A stretch of DNA of 64,000 bases from the NCBI GenBank assembly GCA_965649765.1, contig OZ287749.1:23188001-23252000 (forward strand), written 5' to 3'. Source of the DNA: Bispira polyomma (Eukaryota). The position numbers and the translations under genes were made by a program. Each line of letters starts with the position of its first letter. Position 1 is the first letter of the stretch. The notes beneath the pieces were generated by a model. The model was not told the DNA's origin and searched no databases. It saw nothing but the letters and a program-made list of their open reading frames with translations. Shown here piece after piece: positions 21,141 to 61,574 of the stretch.

Positions 21141-21460
21141 TGGATATACTACAGATGCCCTCACAAGGATACTGTTGGCACCAGAAAGTGAAAAGAATTA
21201 TTCTAACAACTGGTCACAGCAGCTTTGCTTTATATACTTATCGTTTTCTGTCCTGTACAGACTCTCCTTTCAAACCACCTTCTATTATTGTATAGTGAGA
21301 TATATTCTGTACTGCAGCCGCTTACATTCTGAGTGAGTTCTGTCAAAGCATGTTATTAAAAGACCCTAATTGACCATGTTAGAGAATAGGCTTTTAGTGA
21401 CCAGATGATTTTGTTTTATCCTTCTTATTTTTTCCAATTACATCGTTGACTTTTTCTACA

Positions 21461-21643
21461 CAGTCGTTTAAGTTGTGGGTGAAATTGAACCAATGTTGTC
21501 CTGGGCTAGGGGTGACCTTTAAAGGTCATAGTTATTGAGAGTGAGGAATCAGATGCTGTTTGGGATAATTTTTATTCTAACTACTCGTCTCTATATACAA
21601 CTGTACAAAAAATCATTTTTGATTAAAAATTTTTAAAATGCCA
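21461..21643 (-). repeat. E1 repeat B2
   Basis: Near-identical to 22438..22619; AATAAA on the minus strand. Confidence 0.95.
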
Positions 21644-22009
21644 TCATGGCTACATGAACAAGAACCAAGAACTGGCTAAAATACGAAAGGGGGTAAAAAT
21701 AACCCTGAAAGCATGTAAAGTGCTAAGATAAAAGTCAACCACCTAATTGGGCGACATAAAGTTGAGTACTACAACAAATAATATATATCGCCAACCACGT
21801 ACAAGGTGGGACATAAACAATAATACTAAGTCAAATGACATAAGATTACGTACTACAATAATAGATATAGTCGACCACATAAAGGTGACATATATAGTAG
21901 TAGTCAACCACGCATTCGGGCGACAAAATAACTCAGAATATCAGAGTTCAGAAGAGTAAAATAAGTTAGTGATTACTGGCTAAGGAATTTTGTTTTAAAA
22001 TTTAAATAT

Positions 22010-22151
22010 GAATGGGAGCTCGAAACGCTGGGCACCTATTCGCCTGCAGAAAGTCCTACCTCACAGAGCTCTTTTTCAACCCTGGAACCCTAAACGTGAA
22101 CTCAGAGGAAGGGTAAGAGATAAGACTTTCCACATGGTTAATGAGCTTCAT
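22010..22151 (-). ncRNA. Putative structured RNA in the E1 spacer
   Basis: 14-bp stem GAAAGUCUUAUCUC/GAGGUAGGACUUUC (2 G-U pairs on minus), inner ACCCU/AGGGU, loop GAGUUC complementary to downstream GAGCUC, and CUGC-AGGCGAAUAGGUGCC shared with E2 and E4. Confidence 0.6.
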
Positions 22152-22215
22152 CTAAGTCCGAAAAATTTAAATTCACTTTAACTTTAGCCTGTAAAAAGAG
22201 GAGTGGTGGGTGGGG

Positions 22216-22437
22216 ATTTCAAGGTGTTGCTACATTAACTTGCAACTTAATAATGACCAAATGTGAGAAAGGCGGGAAATTGATTTAAACCTAAGGGATT
22301 TGATTGGTAGTGAAGTGAAAGAGGTTCTGGTCTAGGATTGGTGTATCTGGGTAAACAATTCTTAAGTAGGTAAATAATACAGTAAGATATTACAACTTCA
22401 CGACTGACTAGCCATGCTTTGCGAGCAGTGACTACAA
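22216..22437 (-). repeat. E1 repeat A2 (abuts B1, forming the circle-junction sequence)
   Basis: Near-identical to 27680..27902. Confidence 0.95.
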
Positions 22438-22619
22438 CAGTCGTTTAAGTTGTGGGTGAAATTGAACCAATGTTGTCCTGGGCTGGGGTGACCTTTAAAG
22501 GTCATAGTTATTGAGAGTGAGGAATCAGATGCTGTTTGGGATAATTTTTATTCTAACTACTCGTCTCTATATACAACTGTACAAAAAATTATTTTTGATT
22601 AAAAAATTTTAAAATGCCA
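22438..22619 (-). repeat. E1 repeat B1
   Basis: Near-identical to 21461..21643; begins 8 nt after the YR stop. Confidence 0.95.
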
Positions 22620-22627
22620 AAGCCAAA

Positions 22628-23606
22628 TTAGAAAGTAGAAGAGACGAGGGATGCGAACGTTGTTGGAATAATTGTGGAAGCATGAGAGGTAGATTGAAGG
22701 TAAGACCAAACAGCATCTGATTTCCAGCATCCATGTTTTTGAATATGCTGAAGCTTAACATTAGCATTAAATGCCAAGGAGGCACCTGAGCGCCTGAAGC
22801 AATGGAAGGAATGCCCTTCTTTTGGGATTTTCAACTGAGTTAAGATAGAGCTAAGAGTATGCCTTAAACTCGAGTCTGAGAGGCACTGGTCTTTATTTAG
22901 TGGGTTTGCCAGTAATGGATAAGAAGGGGGGAGAGGATATTTATTAAATAGAGAAGTGGCTGCCTTCACAGGACAGAGCCATGGGTTTGAGAGTTCTGGT
23001 AGTTGTATGATGTCTGGGTTTTTTCTGGTTTGGTTAGTCTTACTCCATTTTAATATGAGGTGAATGCCTGGGGGGGCGAACAACACGTCAGCCCTTGTCA
23101 GGTGTCTGGTAGGGTCAAAGGGGAAACCTGATGTGGTGGTCAGGTTAGAAATGCGTAAAAAACCAAAATAAGCAAACAAAAAAGCTGTTCTGAATAAGTC
23201 AGGAAATTGAAACTGGTTACAAGCTTGTGAAATTTGTTGTAATTGGTGTAAATCGAATACCCCTTTGACCCGAGGTGTGTATTTCGAAGTGAGTTCTAAT
23301 GACCTCAAATATAATGGCAATCTAGGGTCATAAAGACCGGTTTGCTGAATGTTAAGAATTTTTGTGTTGTGCCTAATGGAAGCTAAGTAATTACTCAATA
23401 CTTTGTAAGAGACACCTGTTTGTGTCATAAATTCCAAAAAAGCTATAATGCTGTTAAAGCAAAGGTTTCCCTTAAATCAAAGTAAACTGTAAAGCTCAAA
23501 AAGAGTCTGAACTGGCTGTCATATTGTCTTTGTGTCCTAGGTCTGTGACTGTGTCTCAGCCATCTCAAAGCTCCTTTGATCAGTGAGGAGGCTGGGTCAG
23601 AAGTAT
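22628..23606 (-). pseudogene. E1 tyrosine recombinase (one frameshift near 23455)
   Basis: Catalytic set R (FLRISN), K (WSKTNQ), HxxR (HCFRR), W (GCW), Y (VWSY). The N-terminal part TSDPA..HRPRTQ is in a shifted frame. Confidence 0.9.
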
Positions 23607-27679: not shown

Positions 27680-27902
27680 ATTTCAAGGTGTTGCTACATT
27701 AACTTGCAACTTAATAATGACCAAATGTGAGAAAAGGCGGGAAATTGACTTAAACCTAAGGGATTTGATTGGTAGTGAAGTGAAAGAGGTTCTGGTCTAG
27801 GATTGGTGTATCTGGGTAAACAATTCTTAAGTAGGTAAATAATACAGTAAGGTATTACAACTTCACGACTGACTAGCCATGCTTTGCGAGCAGTGACTAC
27901 AA
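27680..27902 (-). repeat. E1 repeat A1 (putative promoter)
   Basis: Matches A2; two CCAAT boxes and TTTCCCGCC on the minus strand. Confidence 0.93.
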
Positions 27903-30843
27903 CTTTCTATCTCATAATTTTAAATAACTTTTTAAATGTTAACTAAATTTAAGATTGATGTAAACTCAATCTACCTCAAAATTAGGGCCACCTTCTATTG
28001 AACTCAGCTTAAGTTAGAGTCAACATCGTTTAAACATATACAAAGATTTTGAGAGTCACCGTTGTTGATAATTATAGTTTGGGGGCAATAACATTTTGCT
28101 GTCATACAAACTTTGTTATAATGGTTGGATCTTTTCAAAAACAGTGATTTGGACTAGACTTGTTTCAAAACATGCTCTTAGAAACATTTTCGTTCCTGCT
28201 CAAAGATGACATCATTATTAACCTAGTCAGATATGTTTTTGGTTTTTAATAATGTTTTGTAACAGCAGAGGTGTATTTGGCGAATTTAGCCATCACGACC
28301 ATAGAGGGGTCTGATTTTTTAGTTTGCCCTATTACAAAATATATTATATCAACCTTAATCCCTGGGGTCCAATTGACCAAGTTTCACTCTGTCTATCCAC
28401 CCACACACTTAACCATTCTCTTAAAAATATCAGGCTACTCCTGATTGAAAAAAACCCTCTGCTATTCACATATTTGTGAGAGTTATTAAATCTACCCATG
28501 CTGTTCCTGGTAGTGTTCCTGGTCCCATTAAGAAACAATGTTCATATTTCCCCCTAATTCCAACCCATTGTGTTACCTTTCACCCATTTCTATTGCATTG
28601 GCCATTACTATGTACACTATCAACAAGCTAATTAGTATCTTTGCTGTGCACACATAATTGCTAGAGTTATTAGTCTGCCCATGCTGGTCATCTTTATGAC
28701 CTGGTGGTTCTCCCATTAATAAACAATGTTCATATTTCTTCTAAATCTTAAACTCTGTATCTCAATGCTTTAATGTGGTTAGATTATTCTGATAATGTAC
28801 TTCAAGCTCTTAGTATATTTGTCATATGTGTGAGAATATTGTCATTCTGAGCTGACGGATAAAAACCAGACTTAGTTTTCAGATATCAGAAGCAACTCTT
28901 TTTAATAAAAATTGACCTTGTTCCCATGTAAGTCTTAGGTGGAGAAAAACTATTATCCAAGTCGTTCTACCAGTGTGTGAAGCTCATACTAGTAAATCTT
29001 AATCAGAAAGAAATATCTCAGCTAAACAAGTCAAGAGTAATTGAACAGGGGCACTGGTATGGACGTGTGTTTGTTGTGTGGAACCTAATGATTAATTTTT
29101 ATGACAGTACAAATAAAGGGATAAGATTACACATTCCAATTACCTTCACTTTTCCTTTGTATGTCTGTGTTTCTCGGTGTCTGCTAACAAATTATCGTCT
29201 GATCATTAAAACTAAATCTTATGTTTAACATTGGAGATAAAATCAACGGTAGTAAAGCCAAAAATATTAGTTATTTAGGTATATTTTTGAAGAATACAAA
29301 ACACAATACTGTATTACCATTGCACATTGTACATAAAGGTTGAGATATGGTGTAGCTGATCAACTCCTTATACCTTTTGACCTTAAGTCAAATCTTTATA
29401 TAAACATCCAATCTTCTGCTGATTCTTGTTCACATTCCTGCAAAAGTAAATGTGACACACAAATCATAGTTACACTAATAAACTCCTGTCTTGGGCAAAG
29501 TTTTGGTTACAGTTATTTTTGAATTTCTTCTGATAACAGATTCACGAGCTTTTACGGGAAAAAAACCTCTATAGTTATATTAAGTTTTCTGGGCCTATAT
29601 GCATCAGGGGGTAATTGTTTCTCAAAGATTTCATGTCCAGTATCCATTTCATTTCAGTGCAATTCTAATATTAAACTGGACCCTGATTTTAGGTATTGGT
29701 TAATTCGTTGCAGTATAAGATACACAATTTTGTGGAATTGGATTAAAGTGTCCTGTACAACGACCTTGTTTAAATGAGAATACATGTAAATGTTCAGAAT
29801 TAAAACCTTAATAATTGTCATGCAGGTTAAAACTAATATGATGTTTATAGGCAAGGATTTGTTTTTTCTCCATTGGATTTTTATTTACTCATTTTTCACA
29901 TCAGTGCGAGAATCTGGGAGGGCGAGGGTAGTCAACCCTCCATCAGATCTTTTTTACAAGTGCAGTATTGTTATAAATTCTTTAACAACATTTAAAAAAC
30001 TATATTAAGCTCTCCGCAATTGCATACCACTAAATTGGCCTTGGGGTAAGAAACATGGACTACCTAATTTTTTATATACTATATGCTGAACCTATTCAAC
30101 TCACCATAAGTGGCAAGGATTTTTGGCCCTTATCCCCAATGGTGGGCTAGCAAACCTTTGTGAGAATGCTAAGATATACTCAAGCATTTCTTCACTTAGT
30201 GGGATGCCAGTTAATGGTGCTCATTGGCTGTACTTTTGCAAATTGAGAAAAGGTAAATTAGAGCTCTGTGCCCTACCGTGCCTGGAGGTACTGTACTGGG
30301 TATACAGGTACAGTGCAATTATTAACATGCTGTAAACGGAGAGCAAATGATAATATAGTGTCTTAGAGGACTTTTCATCACTTTTATACTCGTTTAATTA
30401 TTTTTAACGTTATATGGGCCTAATGCATGAGAATAACATATATAGATATCCAAAGCTTGTTGCAATCTCCAAAGAAACAAATATCAGTTATCAAGACAAA
30501 CATAAAAATAATCACTTTAGGAAAAGTAATTTTGAGCCTAAGGTATGTTCTAATTTCTGTCCAGTCGTTTGCTGTTATACTGGTTTACTTGTCGGGGTGA
30601 AAAAAGAAGTCAAATGCCTGGTATTTTAGCTGCCTTCATGTTTTTAATAGACTGACATTGTGTATTATAATGAATACATGCCGGATGATGTATCTAAGAA
30701 ACTAATACAAATACACTAGGTATCTCCAGGTAAATTAAGTTATAAAAAACCCAGGGGCGATATTCAGCAAACGTCTCAGTCTTAACTTAGTCCTAAAGAT
30801 TTTGGTCTTTGTTTTTTGACTGACAAGGTTACGATTTTTGTCT

Positions 30844-31859
30844 CAGTCGCTTTCAAAAGTGGGTATATGACCTTTAAGGTCAGAAGTGATGACCTTGCAG
30901 GTTAGGAATTATGATTGTGACCTTGAGTTGATCAATTTGATGCAGTTTGGGACAAATTATTTTGTCATCAAAATTTCTATATACAGCTCTATGCAAAAAT
31001 TTTAAGGTTAAAATTTTTAGAAAATGCCTGTCATATAAACATGGCAAGTAATTACTTGGGGTGTAAGTTCCCCTTACAAATAAAATAATAAAATTACTTT
31101 AAAACATGCCTTATAGCAAGTATGGCCAACCTAGGCCTATGACAAGTAGTAAATATTAAGAACATTTATATTAGGCATACGTAAGCCTTGTAAATAAAAT
31201 GTTACTAAGCATACGGCTTGATGTGAGTTCTTGTACTCAAGTATTATTTGTGGTATGTGCTAAACGCTAATATATGTGTTTTCAAGATGGCCGTTGTACA
31301 GCCTACATTTATGTCAAGATTGGCTGTCTTACAGCTTGTAAGTGATGAGCCATTTGTGGTTTCAGGTAACTTTGCTGTTTGCCAGTACATTATGTTTAGT
31401 GATAAGTCAATTTCTATCTCAAACAAAATCTCCACCCAGATTGGAACCCGGGTCCTATGGCACCTATTCGTGTAGCAGTGAAGGCCCTCAGCTGCAGAGC
31501 TTTAATCGCCGGTAGCCCACACCAGGGGGTAGCTGCATGCTGAGGACCAGCACCACATGGATCCGGGGTCGGATCTGTTGGTTTGGACACGTGAGATATA
31601 TATAAAGACAAGTTTCTCGACCATACTAAGTTAAGGGTGGTGGGTAGGGTCAAATTTTTACTTGTTGTCTCGTTGCTTTCAAAGTTTATAATGCTAACAT
31701 AAAGGGAAAGGCGGGAAATCACCCAGGAATCGAAGTATTTGATTGGTCTTAATCTGCCAACTAATTGGCTTTAGGTTGGTATACAAATAATCTTACAGTA
31801 CACTTCTACTTTTTAGCGCCTGAAATGCCATGCAGACTTAATGTCTGCAGTGACGTTCA
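30844..31859 (-). mobile_element. E2: solo A-spacer-B unit of a Ngaro-like element (no ORFs)
   Basis: Starts CAGTCG like E1; B motifs GATGCAGTTTGGG and AAAATGCC; structured core closely matching E4; G-rich tract; GGCGGGAAA and CCAAT; ends GCAGTGACGTTCA. Confidence 0.85.
31444..31570 (-). ncRNA. Putative structured RNA in the E2 spacer
   Basis: Aligns without gaps to 60010..60136, with compensatory and G-U-preserving changes in the stems. Confidence 0.7.
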
Positions 31860-35330: not shown

Positions 35331-37294
35331 CATATGATAGTGTATTACTAAATAATGATTTTAATTGTTGCGCCTTAGAGCCAGCCAGTACGGAGATTAA
35401 GCGCCATTACGAAATTGATTAGATTAGATGATGATAAGACCCCCGATGTGGCGGTGTACGAATAAATAGTACTAATGGGTGACAGGATACAGTGATTACT
35501 GCACAAGGCACAATTTGATGATGATTCTTTGGTCAAAAAGGATAATAACTAGAATATAATCAGTAACAATTCACATATAAGTCTGTTTAAAGCTTTTAAG
35601 AGTAATATTACTCTGATTATGGTACCTCTACTCCTTAATGCATCCATCTAGAGTGCTAATTAATGCATTTACAACCCTTGCTTGGTCTTATTACAAATGT
35701 CATTGAATTTTAAACTAAGTTATTTATTTTAAGTTTCAGAATGACCCAGCTATTCAGATTTGCAAAAATGATAAAAAAAGTGATATATTTATGTACAATT
35801 ATTCTGCTAAATCATGTTTATTATAAGGTACATGAGTTTTAATTATTCTATTATCTTATTGCCTATTCTCTTCAGAGAACCAAAACCATTGTATTTTTTT
35901 GTGGCAAAATAATGCCCCAGCATTTACCCCCAGCATTTACCAGGGAAATCAAATTCATTCTGAATTTACTAATGTCAATCTATCCGTATCAATTGGACAC
36001 AAATTAATTGCATGTTCGTGATTTACTTCTGAATCCCGGGAGAGTATTTCCCTTTTATATTGCAGCATGAAGGTGGCTCATTCACAAGATGAAAGGGTTC
36101 ATGACCCTTAGTTGGTAATTACTGTCCTACCAAAAGAAAGTGATGTAGAAAAAAATGTCACATTAAATATCATGGGGGGTCTCACAGTTAATAGCTGTAC
36201 CATTTAACTTTTCGGGAACCCGTCCTCATGCCTTTACAATATACCTAAGTTTGAAAACTTAAATTTGTTTGGAAAAACTGATTCAAAGATTTAAAATGCT
36301 CCAATCTCCTGTTTTTATTGCCATGGCAAATGACAAATAAACTGCTTACTCACAGAGTAGAATATTTGAGCTCAATGCTAATCCGAATACTATTAAGTAG
36401 TTTCTGCGGTAGTTTTTCTTGCAAGCTAGTTAATTTGTCAAATAATTTTTTTTGGGTTAATCCCCATGGTCATGTGTCTTTCTCATTCTATACCATTGGT
36501 AACTACGGAACTTAAAGTTCAGCATTTTAGTATTTGCATGAACATAATTTTAGTCCATATTTAATTTCTCCTAATTCACAAATACTCACCTGATAGTCAA
36601 ACTGTATTTATAATTAAAAGTCACTTGGAACCATTTATAATGGGAAAATAATCGAGTCCACTACCATATTACATTTTACTGCAGTGGTTAAGCCAATGCT
36701 ATAACGTATTAATGTAATCTATGTTGCCATTGCTGGAAGAAGTTTTACTCAAAGTCTTAGTTGAGAATTGTTTGTGTCTCTGAATAATCACCTGGACGAC
36801 ATATATGGTGGAAGTCAATATAATGGGGTAAAATGTGCTCATTCTACCAAATTAAAATCTTTACAGAACAAAACTAAATATAAGAGTAAAATCAAATAAC
36901 CCAGAAAGTAACAATATGGGGCAATTCAAGAAAAGGCACTCCCTGGTTAGCTTTGCTTTACTCTGGGAGTAATTCTGGTGTCTTTCATTTATACCTTTAA
37001 TAAAATCTTTGTAACTACTAAGTGTCAGCTGTCACTAAAAACATCGGTAATTAATTAGTGACAAGTTTCTTATCTAAAATTGTGTTCTTCTTGACATTCA
37101 TTAATTTTTGGTAAACAATTATTTTAAGAACGCGCAATTGAATTAATATACTTTAGTTAAAACAAATATTCTACAATAAACATCAATAATAGCTGATATG
37201 TAATAGTGGTGGTGAAATAATGAGTTTATTGATGTTGCAGTGGCACATGGTTTCAGTCACAACCACCAGTTTAGTCAACCTTAACACCCCCCTC

Positions 37295-37770
37295 TACCCA
37301 ACTCCTTGCTCTGTCTGAGGTCACCCTTAAACATTTCACCCCCTCTAGTTATACCCCCTTTCTCTCAATCTTTATCTCTCTCCCCTACCCAACTCTTACC
37401 TCTGTCTGAGATCATCCTCAAACATTTCACCCCCATCTAATTATACCCTCTTTCTCCCAGTTTTTAGTCTTTCCTACCCAACTCCTTGCTCTGTCTGAGG
37501 TCACCCTTAAACATTTCACCCCCTTTAGTTATACCCCCTTTCTCTCAACTTCTACTCTCCCCTACCCGACTCTTACCTCTGTCTGAGGTCACCCTTAAAC
37601 ATTTCACCCCCCTTTAGTTATACCCCCTTTCTCTTAACCTTTACTCTCCCCTAGCCGACTCTTACCTCTGTCTGAGGTCACATTAAACATTTCACCCCAT
37701 CTAGTTATACCCTCTTTCAACCTTTATAAATCTCCCCTACCCAACTCTTACCTCTTTCTGCGGTCACTTT
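37295..37770. repeat. Minisatellite, ~88-bp unit, 5 full copies plus a partial
   Basis: Units start near 37295, 37385, 37474, 37562, 37651 and 37737 (CTACCCAACTC..CTCTGTCTGAGGTCACCCTTAAACATTTCACCCC). Confidence 0.92.
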
Positions 37771-43571: not shown

Positions 43572-45728
43572 GGGGCTACTGCAGAGATGCAGTGGCTGAA
43601 AATCTGGTTTATAGTGGGCAGTTTTACAGGACTGACTTTAGTGTGGCGAATAAATGTAGTTATAGTGAGGTTCTGAAACAAACACGGAGACCTGAAAGGT
43701 CACAGAGAAATCTGTCAAGTCAAAAGTGTCTTTCCAGGTCAAATCTAAATGGTAGGCACCATGCCAGGCGGGTCAAGTGTTCTAATGCTGATTTTAAAAA
43801 TGACTGTAACAGATCTATTGTCCCCCATAAGTTCACGTCACACAGTACCACCCAGCACAAGGGCAAGACTAGTGTTGGAGGGAAAAGCACTGTACAGGGG
43901 GAAACTGAGGGCAAATCCGTCAAATACAAATGTAAATGCATGTGTGAATGCAAACAATAACTCCAGTGGGGTCTCTGTCTATAATAGATTTGAAGTGTTA
44001 AACCAAATCGATGCCAATGGTTTAGAAAATCACACTGTTGGTGCTACCGTGTGTAGTCCAAAAAAGGAGCCAACAGGGGCTTGTAAAAATAATTCAGTTA
44101 GAAAACTTAAGGCCATCGCTGATGTGGTGGATCCTTGTAAAAGTATCGAGACTGAAAGCAGTACAAATAGTATTGAAACTGACAAATATGCGTTTGAGTT
44201 AAAACAAAAGGCAAATAAGAGGGAACTCCTGGATAAAGCAAAAAACTGTAAAACTTATTGTGCTTGGCGTGCTCAGAGCAGAGTGGCCTATGGCTTCACA
44301 CCACTGTCAGACTTGGGCTGCAGGGTGTGGGACCATGGCTCTACAAATTATAGTTCTGATATTTTTAGAATGCATAAATTACTCCGCCAAGATGGCAGAC
44401 AAAACTTTAAAGGGTTGCAATTACCGGTTACTTCTCAGTTAAAACCTGAAAAGTGGGCTCAGTACCTCGAGAATTACTGGGACTGGCAGTTACCGTTACT
44501 TATTAAATATGGCTTCCCCCTCGATGTCAGTCGTGACAACATCGATCAGTCGCATGAGGAAAACCATAAATCGGCAATTGACTTTCCCGAACACGTGGAC
44601 ACCTATTTTCGGGGCAATACTGGGTCCTTTCGACAAACCTCCTATAAAGAATATGCACTTCTCTCCCATGATGACCCGTGACAAGTCTAGTTCAACCAAC
44701 AGAAGGGTCATTGTAGGCCCCAGTTGGCCTCTTGATTGTTCTGTTAATGCGGGGGCTTCTGCGTGCGAGTATCTGGGAACAGAATTTTTGTTGTCCTATC
44801 CCTCGGTAGATAATGTAACTAGGGAAGTGGCAGAGCTGGGCAGAGGTTGCCATATCTTTAAAGTCGATATTAGTCGCGCATTTAGGAATGTGCCTATAGA
44901 CCCTGGGGATGTGGATTTGCTTGGTCTTAAATAGGGGTCCTATTATCTGGACAGATCGTTACCATTCAGATATCAGAATGGCTCCACTATTTTCCAGCAA
45001 ATTTCTGACTTGGTAAGACACATCATGGCACAGGAAGGCTACCATATACACGGAGGAGCTGGGGGAAATCAAAGCATTATGTAAGCAGTGGGAGGGTAAG
45101 AGTACTTGTACTAAGAGACAATTACAATCACTGCTAGGGTCCCTTCTTTATGTGTCGAAATGCACAAGATATTCTTGGGTATACCTCAACCACATGTTGC
45201 AAACTTTAAGAGACAATCACAGTAAGAAACACTTCCCTTTTAATAAAGATTTTAGGAGAGATCTCAAGTCGTTCCTCAGGTTCATGCAGCAGTTCAATGG
45301 AGTCAGTTTTTTGCCCATAGACCAACTTATGCACAGGTAGAGCTGGATGCCTGCCTAACTGGGATGGGGGCATCTATGATAACCAAGTATACAAGCTCTT
45401 AGTGGCCTTAAGGCTTTGGGCTTCATCCTGGAAGGGCAAACGTGTACTTTTTAAGTGCGATAACCAGGCCGTTGTCAGCGTACTTATGCATGGGGGCACA
45501 CAGGATCAACTTTTGGCCACCTATTCTCGAAATATCTATATGATTGCCAGTCAGTTTGACATTGATCTCAGAGTAATCCATATAATGGGAGTGAAAAACA
45601 AGGTGGCGGATTTGTTTTCCAGGTGGGACAAGACTAACAATAATCTCATATTGCTGCATGAATGGGTGGGACCAGTAGTATGGATTCCCATACATACAAA
45701 CCTCTTAAAGGTTGACAAGAGTATATAA
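43568..45728 (+). pseudogene. E5 pol (RT/RNase H), disrupted
   Basis: YGFPLD, NHKSA, KVDISRAFRNVPIDP, LDAC, CDNQAVV, NKVADLFSR. Confidence 0.85.
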
Positions 45729-46352
45729 TATTTTAAGATTGTTATTTGTATTTTGTGTCAGGTTCAAGTCCAGCGGGTGCACTGCTTACCACGTTAGCTT
45801 GTGACAGATTGCATACAGCCTTTGCTACGTCCACTTGGAAGGCCCACAGCAGTATGTTCAGGCTCTTTCTGGCCTTTAACATTTTCATGGATTGGCAGAT
45901 AAATCAGGTGAATGCGTCCCAATTACTTGCTTACTTGGAGTTCCTTAATTTTAACAGCGTCACCCCTTCCTACATATCTAACCACTTGGCAGCTATTAAG
46001 GCCAAGTTTAATTTGTTTCAACTAAAAACTGAGGTGTTCTCAGACGCTAGAATTGCCTATTACACAAAGGCCTTATTGGTAAATAGACCTCTTAAAGTGA
46101 AACTAAAAAGTTTATTTGACATTCTCCTGCTCTTGAACCTTATTCAGCCAGTCTATGTCACAAGCCTATGAGTGTGACCTTCAAGCCAGGTAAGGTTAAC
46201 TCTGATGCGTGATCAGTGGATGGTTGACCTTGGATGTTGGAAAAGACTCTGACTCTGTTTGGGATATTTATTTTAAGGCATAAAGTTTTTGCCTCTATAT
46301 ACACAAATTTTTAAGCCATGTTAAAATTAAAAAAGGAATGCCAAAGCCAAAA

Positions 46353-59609: not shown

Positions 59610-59990
59610 CAGTAGTCAAAAATATAATTTGATTTAATGCCAGAGAGAGAGAGACGTGTAAGAAGTTTGATAAGTTTTTGTGAGGTTTGGAAACTAGATG
59701 CTGTTTGGGATGTATTTATTTCTATCTACTGCCTCTATGTACAACTATACAATTAAAATTTTAGTTAATATTTTAAAAAATGCCAATATGGCTACATAAT
59801 AAATTACAAAACAAGAGTATGTTATGCGAAATATAAAGGGATAAAAAAGGTCCCGAAAGAACAACATAAAAGTTGAACACAAGAATACCCAGGATGACTG
59901 AGAGTGTTAAAATTGTTTATAAAAGCTGAAGGAATTGTATATATGAGCTTGTGTGTATATGAATCTTAAGTTCCTCACTATCTCTGACAA

Positions 59991-60150
59991 GACTCAACCT
60001 CCGAGGTCAGAACCCCGGTCCTGCGGCACCTAATCGCCTAGCAGTGAAGGTTCCCAGCTGCAGAGCTTTAATCCTCGGTAGCCCACACCGAGGGGTAGTT
60101 GCGAGCTGAAAACCAGCACCACACGGACCGAGGTTCGAACCCAGGTGGAG
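59991..60150 (-). ncRNA. Putative structured RNA in the E4 spacer
   Basis: Nested stems whose plus-strand C-A mismatches become G-U pairs on minus; hairpin CCUCGGU/ACCGAGG whose loop GGGCU can pair with downstream AGCUC. Confidence 0.72.
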
Positions 60151-60594
60151 TCACGTGGGCAAGTGAGATTATAATTTTGGGTGGAGGGTTGGGAAAAAGA
60201 CGTGTTGCTTACTTAACTTGCAACTTAATAATGCCTTTCTGTGAGAAAAGGGCGGCAAGGAGTTTATTCTGAAGGAAGGTGATTGGTTGCCTGGTTTAAA
60301 TGACCTAAAATCTGATTGGGATAGCTAGGTAAACAATTCTTAAGAAGGGTTTTACAGTAAAGTATTCAATTTTTTCTACTGACTTGCCATGCTATACTAG
60401 CAGTGACATCAACAGTAGTCAAAAATATAATTTGATTTAATGCCAGAGAGAGAGACCTGTAAGAAGTTTGATAAGTTTTTGTGAGGTTTGGAAACTAGAT
60501 GCTGTTTGGGATGTATTTATTTCTATCTACTGCCTCTATGTACAACTATACAATTAAAATTTTAGTTATAATTTAAAAAAATGCCAAAGCCAAA

Positions 60595-61574
60595 TTAGAA
60601 AGTAGAGGAGACAATGGAGGAAAAAGTAGAGGGAATGATAGAGGCTGCATGAGAAGTGGATTGTAAATATGACCAGACAGCATCGGATTTCCAGCATCCA
60701 TGTTTTTGTATATCTTGAAGTTTAACATTGGAATTAAAGGCTAGGGAGGCTCCAGAGCGACGGAAGCAGTGAAATGAATGACCTATGTGTGGAATGTCAA
60801 GGTGAGTGAGGATGTTCTTGAGTGTAAGCCTAAGCTTGGTGTCTGATAAGCAGTTTCCTCTATCACATGGGTTGGCCAGTAATGGGGCCATGGAGTGTAA
60901 AGGGTATTTGTTAAATAAGGCTGTGGCAGCTCTGACAGGACATAGCCAGGGGTTTGATAAGGAAGGTAGTTGAATGATGTCTGGATTTGTCCTACTTTGG
61001 TTAGTTTTACTCCATTTAAGGATAAGGTGAATACCTGGTGGGGCGAATACTATGTCTGCCCTTGTGAGGTGTCTTGTAGGGTCAAAAGGTGAACCGGAAG
61101 TAGTAGTAAGATTGGAAATTCTGAGGAACCCAAAGAAGGCGAAAAGAAAAGCTGTCCTGTATAGTTCAGGGAAGTGAAGTAAATCACAAGCTTGTGAAAT
61201 TTTGGCTAGTTGTAGTAAGTCAAACACTCCCTTTATTCCGGGGGTGTAGTTAGAGGTGAGTTCTAAGGACCTAGTGTACAAGGTCAGTCTGGGGTCATAA
61301 AGACCTGTGTGTAGTATATTCAATAGTTTGGCATTGTGCCTTAGAGCTGATATGTAATTTGCAATCACTTTGTGGGATTTCCCTGTTTGAGTCAGGAACT
61401 CTAGAAATGCCAAAATGGTGTTGAAACTGAAGGTATGATGTAAATCATAATATACAGTGAAGGCTAAAAAGAGTCTGAATTGGCTGTTGTATTGTCTCTG
61501 AGTTCTAGGTCTGTGGCTCTGTCGTAGTCTTGTGAGGGCACCTTGGATCAGTGAGTTTGCTGAGTCAGAAGTGC
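60595..61574 (-). CDS. E4 tyrosine recombinase (intact frame from the predicted splice acceptor)
   Basis: Open from TTTCAG|GC ACT TCT GAC to the stop; full catalytic residue set; no N-terminal ATG. Confidence 0.88.

Follow-up and report, generated by a model that had tools for sequence, protein, structure and literature searches.

A maintained sense-strand RNA structure in the non-coding regions of Ngaro-type tyrosine recombinase retrotransposons

The analyzed window, a stretch of 64,000 nucleotides in total, carries several Ngaro-type retrotransposons on its minus strand. Split direct repeats, RT/RNase H and a tyrosine recombinase (YR), which characterize Ngaro elements, were all found, and the Pfam matches within the window elements were RVT_1, RVT_3 and a weak Phage_integrase. 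In the sense direction, element E1 is arranged as repeat A1 (27903-27680), the ORFs with RT, RNase H and tyrosine recombinase, repeat B1 (22619-22437), repeat A2 (22438-22216), a spacer of ~570 nt and repeat B2 (21643-21460). An RNA module, the subject of this study, is located within this spacer. Further copies are present in elements E4 and E2, and all three lie on the minus strand, i.e. the sense strand. A previous reading made from the letters of the window (here referred to as the sequence-only reading) had placed the module at these three sites on that strand, which was borne out by the covariance-model matches described below. The features of the three elements are:

60595-61413, minus strand: E4 tyrosine recombinase ORF (BLASTP against the E1 and E3 recombinases)
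60413-60587, minus strand: E4 repeat B1 (direct repeats D3 and D12, 97-100% identical to 59610-59786)
59974-60167, minus strand: E4 module, full rod, of the E4/E2 type (type I), with outer helix, stem 2, long arm, tip and small hairpin (MFE -95.4 kcal/mol, z = -4.1, 0/200 shuffles as good)
60025-60038, minus strand: E4 small hairpin P5, GGCG-AUUAGG-UGCC, a motif kept in both types (exact motif match; hairpin predicted by RNAalifold in type I)
59610-59786, minus strand: E4 repeat B2 (direct repeats D3 and D12)
31432-31584, minus strand: E2 module (type I), in a putative solo A-spacer-B unit without ORFs (R1, 167 bits)
31459-31472, minus strand: E2 small-hairpin site, which reads CACGAAUAGGUGCC, so that its stem lacks the first two pairs (motif match; alignment row)
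22628-23437, minus strand: E1 tyrosine recombinase ORF, 77% identical to that of E4 (BLASTP; weak Pfam Phage_integrase match)
22437-22619, minus strand: E1 repeat B1 (direct repeats D2 and D4, 98-99% identical to B2)
22216-22438, minus strand: E1 repeat A2, a copy of A1 (27680-27903), just upstream of the module-bearing spacer (direct repeats D1 and D3, 94-99% identical)
21998-22174, minus strand: E1 module, full rod, of the E1 type (type II), with the three-way junction and an 18-bp arm of unrelated sequence (MFE -53.1 kcal/mol, z = -2.4)
22031-22044, minus strand: E1 small hairpin P5, GGCG-AAUAGG-UGCC (motif match; same hairpin in the MFE fold of the related copy L132)
21460-21643, minus strand: E1 repeat B2, with AATAAA at 21571-21576; the module lies ~360 nt upstream (direct repeats; sequence reading)

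The three module copies could be aligned to each other. The flanking spacers had been described as unalignable and this was confirmed, the only BLAST match between those of E1 and E4 being 20 nt long. Two other repeats were noted in the window. In the E1 spacer, downstream of the module (21700-21960), a motif similar to TGTCGCCC..GTGGTTGAC recurs loosely three times, and six tandem units of ~89 nt (37270-37766), 63-99% alike and C/T-rich, are unrelated to the Ngaro elements.

The genome containing the window comprises 1.04 Gb in 75 contigs. A covariance model built from 18 diverse E4/E2-type copies (R1) matched E4 at 59998-60150 (minus strand) with 172 bits and E2 at 31432-31584 (minus strand) with 167 bits, but E1 at 22004-22161 (minus strand) with only 21 bits. 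On the antisense strands of the window copies R1 scored 14-18 bits (18 bits antisense versus 172 bits sense). A second model, R2, built from E1 and the copy L132, matched E1 at 22003-22161 (minus strand) with 186 bits. Genome-wide, R1 found at least 150 copies at 141-189 bits and R2 at least 150 further copies with scores from 193 down to 50 bits. By BLAST, 550-600 candidate copies were obtained. The module has a length of ~160-230 nt.

Several observations on the distribution of copies stand apart from this count. Type II modules with identical scores are located 0.2-0.4 Mb from the starts of seven contigs of this genome, G000 (C3:315681, C8:375499, C11:236439, C15:313621, C7:280019, C12:265352 and C6:197764). 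A second set lies ~11 kb away, which suggests a duplicated block common to several chromosome ends. Eight type I copies at C7:24444218-24985677, spaced 55-132 kb apart and with two alternating scores, look like a large tandem segmental duplication. Furthermore, a 5S rRNA array of at least 47 copies, some of them 269 nt apart, is present at C1:22582037-22986122.

Three public runs with module sequence gave contigs of DNA-like depth, in which the module bin was 10-25 times deeper than the rest of E4. At 60075, E4 has a private base (A on the sense strand, which makes a U-A pair in the inner hairpin); nearly all contig depth of the three runs carried another base. Additionally, one DNA contig in each run joined 60052 to 60113, omitting the upper long arm and the tip of an E4-type module (60053-60112).

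With regard to the host elements, a match to RNase H or YR was present within 1.5 kb of 64 of the 90 module loci. Proteins were missing at 16 of the first 60 sampled loci, and the flanks of these matched the non-coding ends of Ngaro elements. Judged by their flanks, they appear to be solo A-spacer-B units or truncated elements, like E2, around which neither YR nor RNase H was matched within 1.5 kb and which is likewise flanked by Ngaro non-coding ends. Module copies outside of Ngaro-derived sequence were not found among the sampled loci.

The sequence-only reading had assigned the module to one and the same place, the spacer between A2 and B2. This holds for E1 and E4 but not for a group of loci around L041, which is the exception in module position. 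Here the module is located between two genes, with 125 nt separating it from the preceding RNase H ORF and 180 nt from the recombinase ORF that follows. This position was seen in seven independent loci (L041, L042, L043, L053, L055, L056 and L060). L041 and L114 (G000:C9:49916100-49921265, minus sense) represent a divergent Ngaro lineage, with a YR that is 28-34% identical to those of the window. The 400-nt gap between RNase H and YR in this lineage is filled by a type I module, and the 2.3 kb that follow the YR did not show a repeat pair of the B1/B2 type.

In the E3 lineage the module was not found within 1.7 kb after the YR of one copy that is 96% identical to that of the window. After B1 these elements (window 45200-46250; L131 200-900) continue with GC-richer sequence, and A2, module and B2 are all absent within 1.7 kb; the two copies diverge ~210 nt past the YR stop. 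In repeat B, AATAAA is followed by a conserved (T)TATCCCAAAC (21571-21560; 46267-46250). The same combination is present at L111 4895-4915 in a Ngaro element of another assembly, which suggests that the motif AATAAA-(T)TATCCCAAAC is older than the module. Downstream of this element of another species lies a 97-nt tandem repeat (L111 7157-7932, six overlapping 291-nt matches). Since AATAAA is located within repeat B, the poly(A) signal of B1 precedes the module.

Structural comparison of the copies revealed four common features: an outer helix, the pairing YRUGUGG/CUGC with the arm, a tip and a small hairpin. In both types YRUGUGG pairs with CUGC and the helix continues into an arm of 18-19 bp of free sequence. 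The tip is formed by CCYCUG..CAGGG (in type I CCCUGGU/ACCGGGG) together with an invariant AGCUCUG. The small hairpin reads GGCG-ANUNGG-UGCC, and its stem pairing is kept in 95.7% of cells of the type II alignment. According to this model, the outer helix, the 18-19 bp arm and the small hairpin are predicted to form a three-way junction shared by both types. The outer stem, stem 2, stem 3 and inner hairpin named by the sequence-only reading were all recovered.

Not all of these helices can form at the same time. Stem 2 (UGUGGUGCU/AGGUGCCRYA) competes with the pairing GUGGUG/CACUGC plus the small hairpin. None of the natural variants breaks stem 2 in type I; the second fold is the sole one of the two possible in E1. 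As stem 2 excludes the small hairpin and is impossible in E1, two conformers may exist. A similar competition concerns the tip, where the inner hairpin with the pseudoknot and a nested helix pair draw on identical bases. The pseudoknot strands are invariant within the E4/E2 type. Between the types its pairing is retained, as GGGCU, AGGGUU and AGAGUC each pair with AGCUC(U) or GGCUCU, and one change from U-A to C-G in L150/L153 favours it. However, 80.6% of tip cells are paired in the pseudoknot fold compared to 91.1% in the competing nested helix, and this favours the latter. The H-type pseudoknot is possible as one of two tip folds that are equally compatible with the variation. A second pseudoknot of UYGC with GCRA was considered but was not supported: changes in L021 and L033 look compensatory, but A-C mismatches are as frequent (L016, L039 and L052).

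That the module covaries had been claimed from the three window copies, and larger alignments agree. In an alignment of 56 distinct E4/E2-type copies, 92.9% of cells were paired. Here, 81 cells were changed on both sides compared to 34.5 ± 4.8 after shuffling (0/500) and at most 19 in slid controls, copies inside one lineage being non-independent in counts of this kind. The type II alignment of 26 copies is mostly of the E1 type, includes one E4-type row and one antisense match, and has twenty rows that are low R2 scorers; 24 of its 43 pairs were changed on both sides compared to 12.9 ± 2.2 after shuffling (0/500), a count that leans towards the structure, since covariance-model alignments are fitted to their models. 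The two independent alignments therefore exceeded their shuffles, and type I exceeded the slid controls as well.

The clearest compensatory pairs of the type I outer helix were G-C/A-U/C-G, U-A/C-G and G-C/C-G, and in stem 3 of this type C-G/U-A exchanges occurred in 27 and 22 rows. Compensatory changes were found in 9 of 11 pairs of the type II long arm, whereas 7 of 11 pairs in the type I long arm showed merely sporadic single-copy changes across deep lineages. The outermost arms are lineage specific yet complementary (for example CCACCUCC/GGAGGUGG, CACUGC/GCAGUG and CUACUAUA/UAUAGUAG). The rod therefore spans ~195 nt in E4 (59974-60167) and contains the ~130-160 nt recognized earlier, which had been set too short.

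The paired cells comprised 254 G-U compared to 105 A-C, and several tandem G-U pairs were invariant. Both favour the sense RNA, as the sequence-only reading had proposed. We conclude that the module is a maintained, structured RNA on the sense strand of YR retrotransposons.

The range of R2 scores from 193 down to 50 bits indicates that type II is far more diverse than type I. L132, a copy downstream of another recombinase gene, has an E1-like module with compensatory changes in the long arm. Several copies found by R2 read CUGCUAGGCGAYUAGGUGCC, as in type I, and the presence of this stretch in both sets links the types. The arm length is constant (18-19 bp) despite the free sequence, and both types retain the motifs of junction and tip. 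Types I and II would therefore represent one family and the two ends of a spectrum.

The distribution of the types did not follow the phylogeny of the proteins. The recombinases of E1 and E4 are 77% identical, yet their module types differ. Conversely, in 210 pairs of type I loci the core identity was 88-91% whether the recombinases were 28% or 80% identical. In the recombinase tree all deep branches, that of the L041 group (branch length 1.8) among them, bear type I; type II is limited to one shallow clade, the internal branching of which is without resolution. This discordance argues against a tight co-evolution of the module with an element protein. Together with the one lineage that carries the module at another site, it indicates that the module appears to move between lineages. 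Since the arm sequence is free in type II and nearly unchanged across deep lineages in type I, the spread of type I would be recent. Type I has probably passed between lineages in recent times, by recombination or re-acquisition, rather than having been held still by selection alone.

To relate the module to known RNA families, we analyzed the whole window with Rfam 15 (4227 models, including hammerhead, HDV, twister, twister-sister, pistol, hatchet, hairpin, tRNA, 5S and SRP), and nothing was found at the gathering score. At E<=10, nothing was found on E4, on type II or on five type I variants. The sequence-only reading had not recognised it as a known family, in agreement with this. ARAGORN did not find a tRNA gene in the window and the Rfam tRNA models were blank at E<=10. 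A stretch of the arms, GGTTCGAACC, is similar to a tRNA B box; the E2-type arms do not have it. An origin from 5S rRNA, suggested by a likeness to the 3' end of 5S, was rejected, since the similarity of E4, E2 and E1 to the 5S of the genome itself (L115) was within that of shuffles (fraction as good 0.11-0.94).

Known ribozyme folds were also mapped by hand. The layout of an HDV-like ribozyme requires a nested double pseudoknot (P1-P2-P3-L3-P1'-P1.1-P4-J4/2(C)-P2'). GGCGAAU-AGGUGCC could serve as J4/2 and P2', but GGUGCU is the sole partner for P2' and at the same time the sole candidate for P1. Furthermore, room for P3/L3 is lacking before the long arm and E1 is without any P2 partner. The core strands of the hammerhead, CUGANGA and GAAA, are absent; the junction strands of type I measure 1-3 nt (G/GU, UA and RYA) and those of type II are CA, A and GAGC (E1: CAGCG). 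The mappings to twister and pistol failed on topology.

In the searched literature Ngaro is given as A1-ORFs-B1A2B2, and a structured RNA like the module is not described there. The module was also not found in seven loci of other species with Ngaro-type recombinase genes (L111-L113 and L127-L130, from two ENA assemblies), one of which has a recombinase 65% identical to that of E4. R1 gave zero matches on L111-L113, the three loci searched with it. Their spacers were without similarity to E1 or E4. Downstream of six of the seven loci (L129 left out), a module common to distant lineages was not present; a long hairpin in L112 was non-significant (z = -1.1). In a pattern scan of metagenomes all 11 matches were due to chance, and a scan of viral contigs gave zero. 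On the data sampled, the module appears to be specific to this genome or its near kin.

In DIRS-order elements the primer and packaging signals are unidentified (PMC7192593), in agreement with the earlier remark that priming in YR retrotransposons is unclear. Our proposal on function starts from the structure, conservation, strand, copy number, two positions and protein-tree mismatch of the module as observed. It may be regarded as the best candidate so far for a signal that marks Ngaro RNA for copying or packaging. Tentatively, we propose that it acts in cis and singles out the full-length RNA for replication: it would be a signal for packaging/dimerisation, or else a site where the RT complex is recruited and assembled. 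The sense genomic RNA would fold into a long rod that opens into the three-way junction, with an arm carrying the conserved and possibly pseudoknotted tip and with the invariant small hairpin. In most lineages the module follows the first poly(A) signal (in B1) and would hence be present on read-through RNA only, which would also be the bearer of the B1-A2 junction needed by the published model of Ngaro replication. In the L041 group, just upstream of the recombinase gene, it would be intronic in a hypothetical spliced Gag-YR message. Common to both positions is that shorter messages would be without the module. One common module would allow distant lineages to co-package and recombine, and this would explain its spread.

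However, a signal that is read by the Gag or RT of the element should co-evolve with it. Lineages with 28% identical recombinases share the module and E1 and E4 (77%) differ in it, which counts against the proposed cis-signal, as does the absence of the module from the Ngaro loci of other species and from the E3 lineage (within 1.7 kb). The main rival, which we consider somewhat unlikely, is a docking element for a host factor comparable to the constitutive transport element (CTE) of simian type D retroviruses, by which intron-containing or read-through RNA would be exported, stabilised or translated. One partner per host would fit a module that is constant over lineages with proteins down to 28% identity and discordant with the YR tree, and it explains this indifference to protein divergence better than the cis-signal does. 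The two different non-coding positions, the lack of the module in the sampled Ngaro elements of other species and the shape of the module, an extended hairpin that lies in the 3' part of the element and has conserved internal features, point in the same direction. Explained worse is the wide drift of type II (50-193 bits) within one host, which is odd for a fixed partner, and neither a CTE-like sequence nor the two-fold loop symmetry of the CTE was seen.

Three further explanations have less in their favour. That the module belongs to a separate short non-coding transcript, with A2 as putative promoter and B2 as terminator, acting in trans as primer, decoy or regulator, is improbable: repeat A does have CCAAT-like and TTTAAA motifs, B has AATAAA and solo A-spacer-B units are frequent, with 16 among the first 60 loci sampled, but the L041-group module lies between two ORFs, where a flanking repeat pair was not found. 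It seems quite improbable that a host RNA gene or SINE-like sequence was captured or that the module acts in DNA as a hairpin or recombination site. Its restriction to the host genome, its presence in unrelated lineages, its long inverted repeat and the resemblance of GGTTCGAACC in the arms to a B box would suit these roles. On the other hand, ARAGORN and the Rfam tRNA models were blank, similarity to the 5S rRNA of the genome was within shuffles and no copies outside of Ngaro sequence were found among those sampled; the lineage-specific complementary outer arms with compensatory changes and the G-U excess point to the sense RNA, not to duplex DNA or antisense cDNA. Ribozymes are employed by other classes of retrotransposons, and the sequence-only reading had listed a new ribozyme among its options. 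Conserved unpaired stretches beside variable helices, the possible pseudoknot and the stretch GGCGAAU-AGG, which resembles J4/2-P2 of HDV ribozymes, could speak for a new self-cleaving ribozyme that trims the element RNA. We regard this as highly improbable, because the Rfam ribozyme families were blank even at E<=10, the HDV topology is impossible on these helices with P1 and P2 strands made of the same bases, the hammerhead core is absent and cleavage in the L041 group would sever the genomic RNA between pol and YR.

A replication signal of the kind preferred here, marking the full-length RNA in cis, would resemble the Psi/DIS of retroviruses and LTR retrotransposons, which are also structured cis elements on the sense genomic RNA and confined to the full-length RNA. 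Shared Psi/DIS signals permit co-packaging and recombination, as would explain the spread of the module. However, the place of Psi/DIS is the 5' leader, and it is the Gag of the same element that reads them. The module, by contrast, is found in the 3' part or between pol and YR and shows no co-variation with the proteins of the element, and any binding partner of it is putative. The CTE of the Mason-Pfizer monkey virus (simian type D) and the RTE of murine IAP are, like the module, long imperfect hairpins (150-230 nt) in the 3' part of a retroelement. They have a constant partner and are needed where unspliced RNA leaves the nucleus, while a host partner of the module is hypothetical. Two identical internal loops in 180-degree symmetry bind NXF1 in the CTE. 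Neither common sequence nor such duplicated, rotationally symmetric loops were seen in the module, which instead has a three-way junction and the small hairpin, and the quasi-symmetric pair GGUGCU/GGUGCC was the sole symmetry seen in it.

The 3' stem-loops shared by LINEs and SINEs offer a further parallel, as they are structured tails exchanged among unrelated elements that give access to a reverse transcriptase, that of the LINE, which recognises them stringently. In this case, non-autonomous SINEs borrow the tail of one LINE, whereas the module is common to autonomous lineages with their own RT, which integrate by tyrosine recombinase and are not target-primed. It is conceivable, if rather unlikely, that the module is a replication signal of YR retrotransposons, at which genomic RNAs dimerise, are packaged or enter reverse transcription, and that it serves as an exchangeable cassette. 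Distant lineages of one genome would then have obtained one and the same version, which would open the machinery of other lineages to them and let them recombine, and the module would be the counterpart of the LINE/SINE tail partnership among autonomous elements. The HDV-like ribozymes of R2 and other non-LTR retrotransposons resemble the module as structured RNAs with a pseudoknot option and a motif resembling GGCGAAUGGGAC, but their nested double-pseudoknot topology is unformable here and an Rfam match is lacking. Within the DIRS order, a hairpin of ~14 nt at the 3' terminus of the DIRS-1 mRNA was put forward as a possible self-primer by Poulter and Goodwin, as cited in PMC7192593. As far as that citation goes, it matches the module in being a hairpin from the 3' region of an element of the DIRS order and was proposed for the priming step; it lies at the very 3' end, in contrast to the 160-230 nt of the module, located 200-360 nt upstream of B2 or between genes. 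From these positions, simple fold-back priming from the 3' end would be impossible.

The module provides a concrete object of ~160 nt, with a mapped junction and an invariant 14-nt hairpin, for the question how DIRS, Ngaro and PAT elements choose and prime their RNA (PMC7192593). Its hundreds of copies supply natural compensatory mutants. If binding of a host factor were to prove true, an invertebrate-style genome would have supplied a new element for RNA export or stability. Furthermore, the mismatch between module and protein tree suggests that lineages trade non-coding signals, which would bear on the definition of families among these elements and on their competition.
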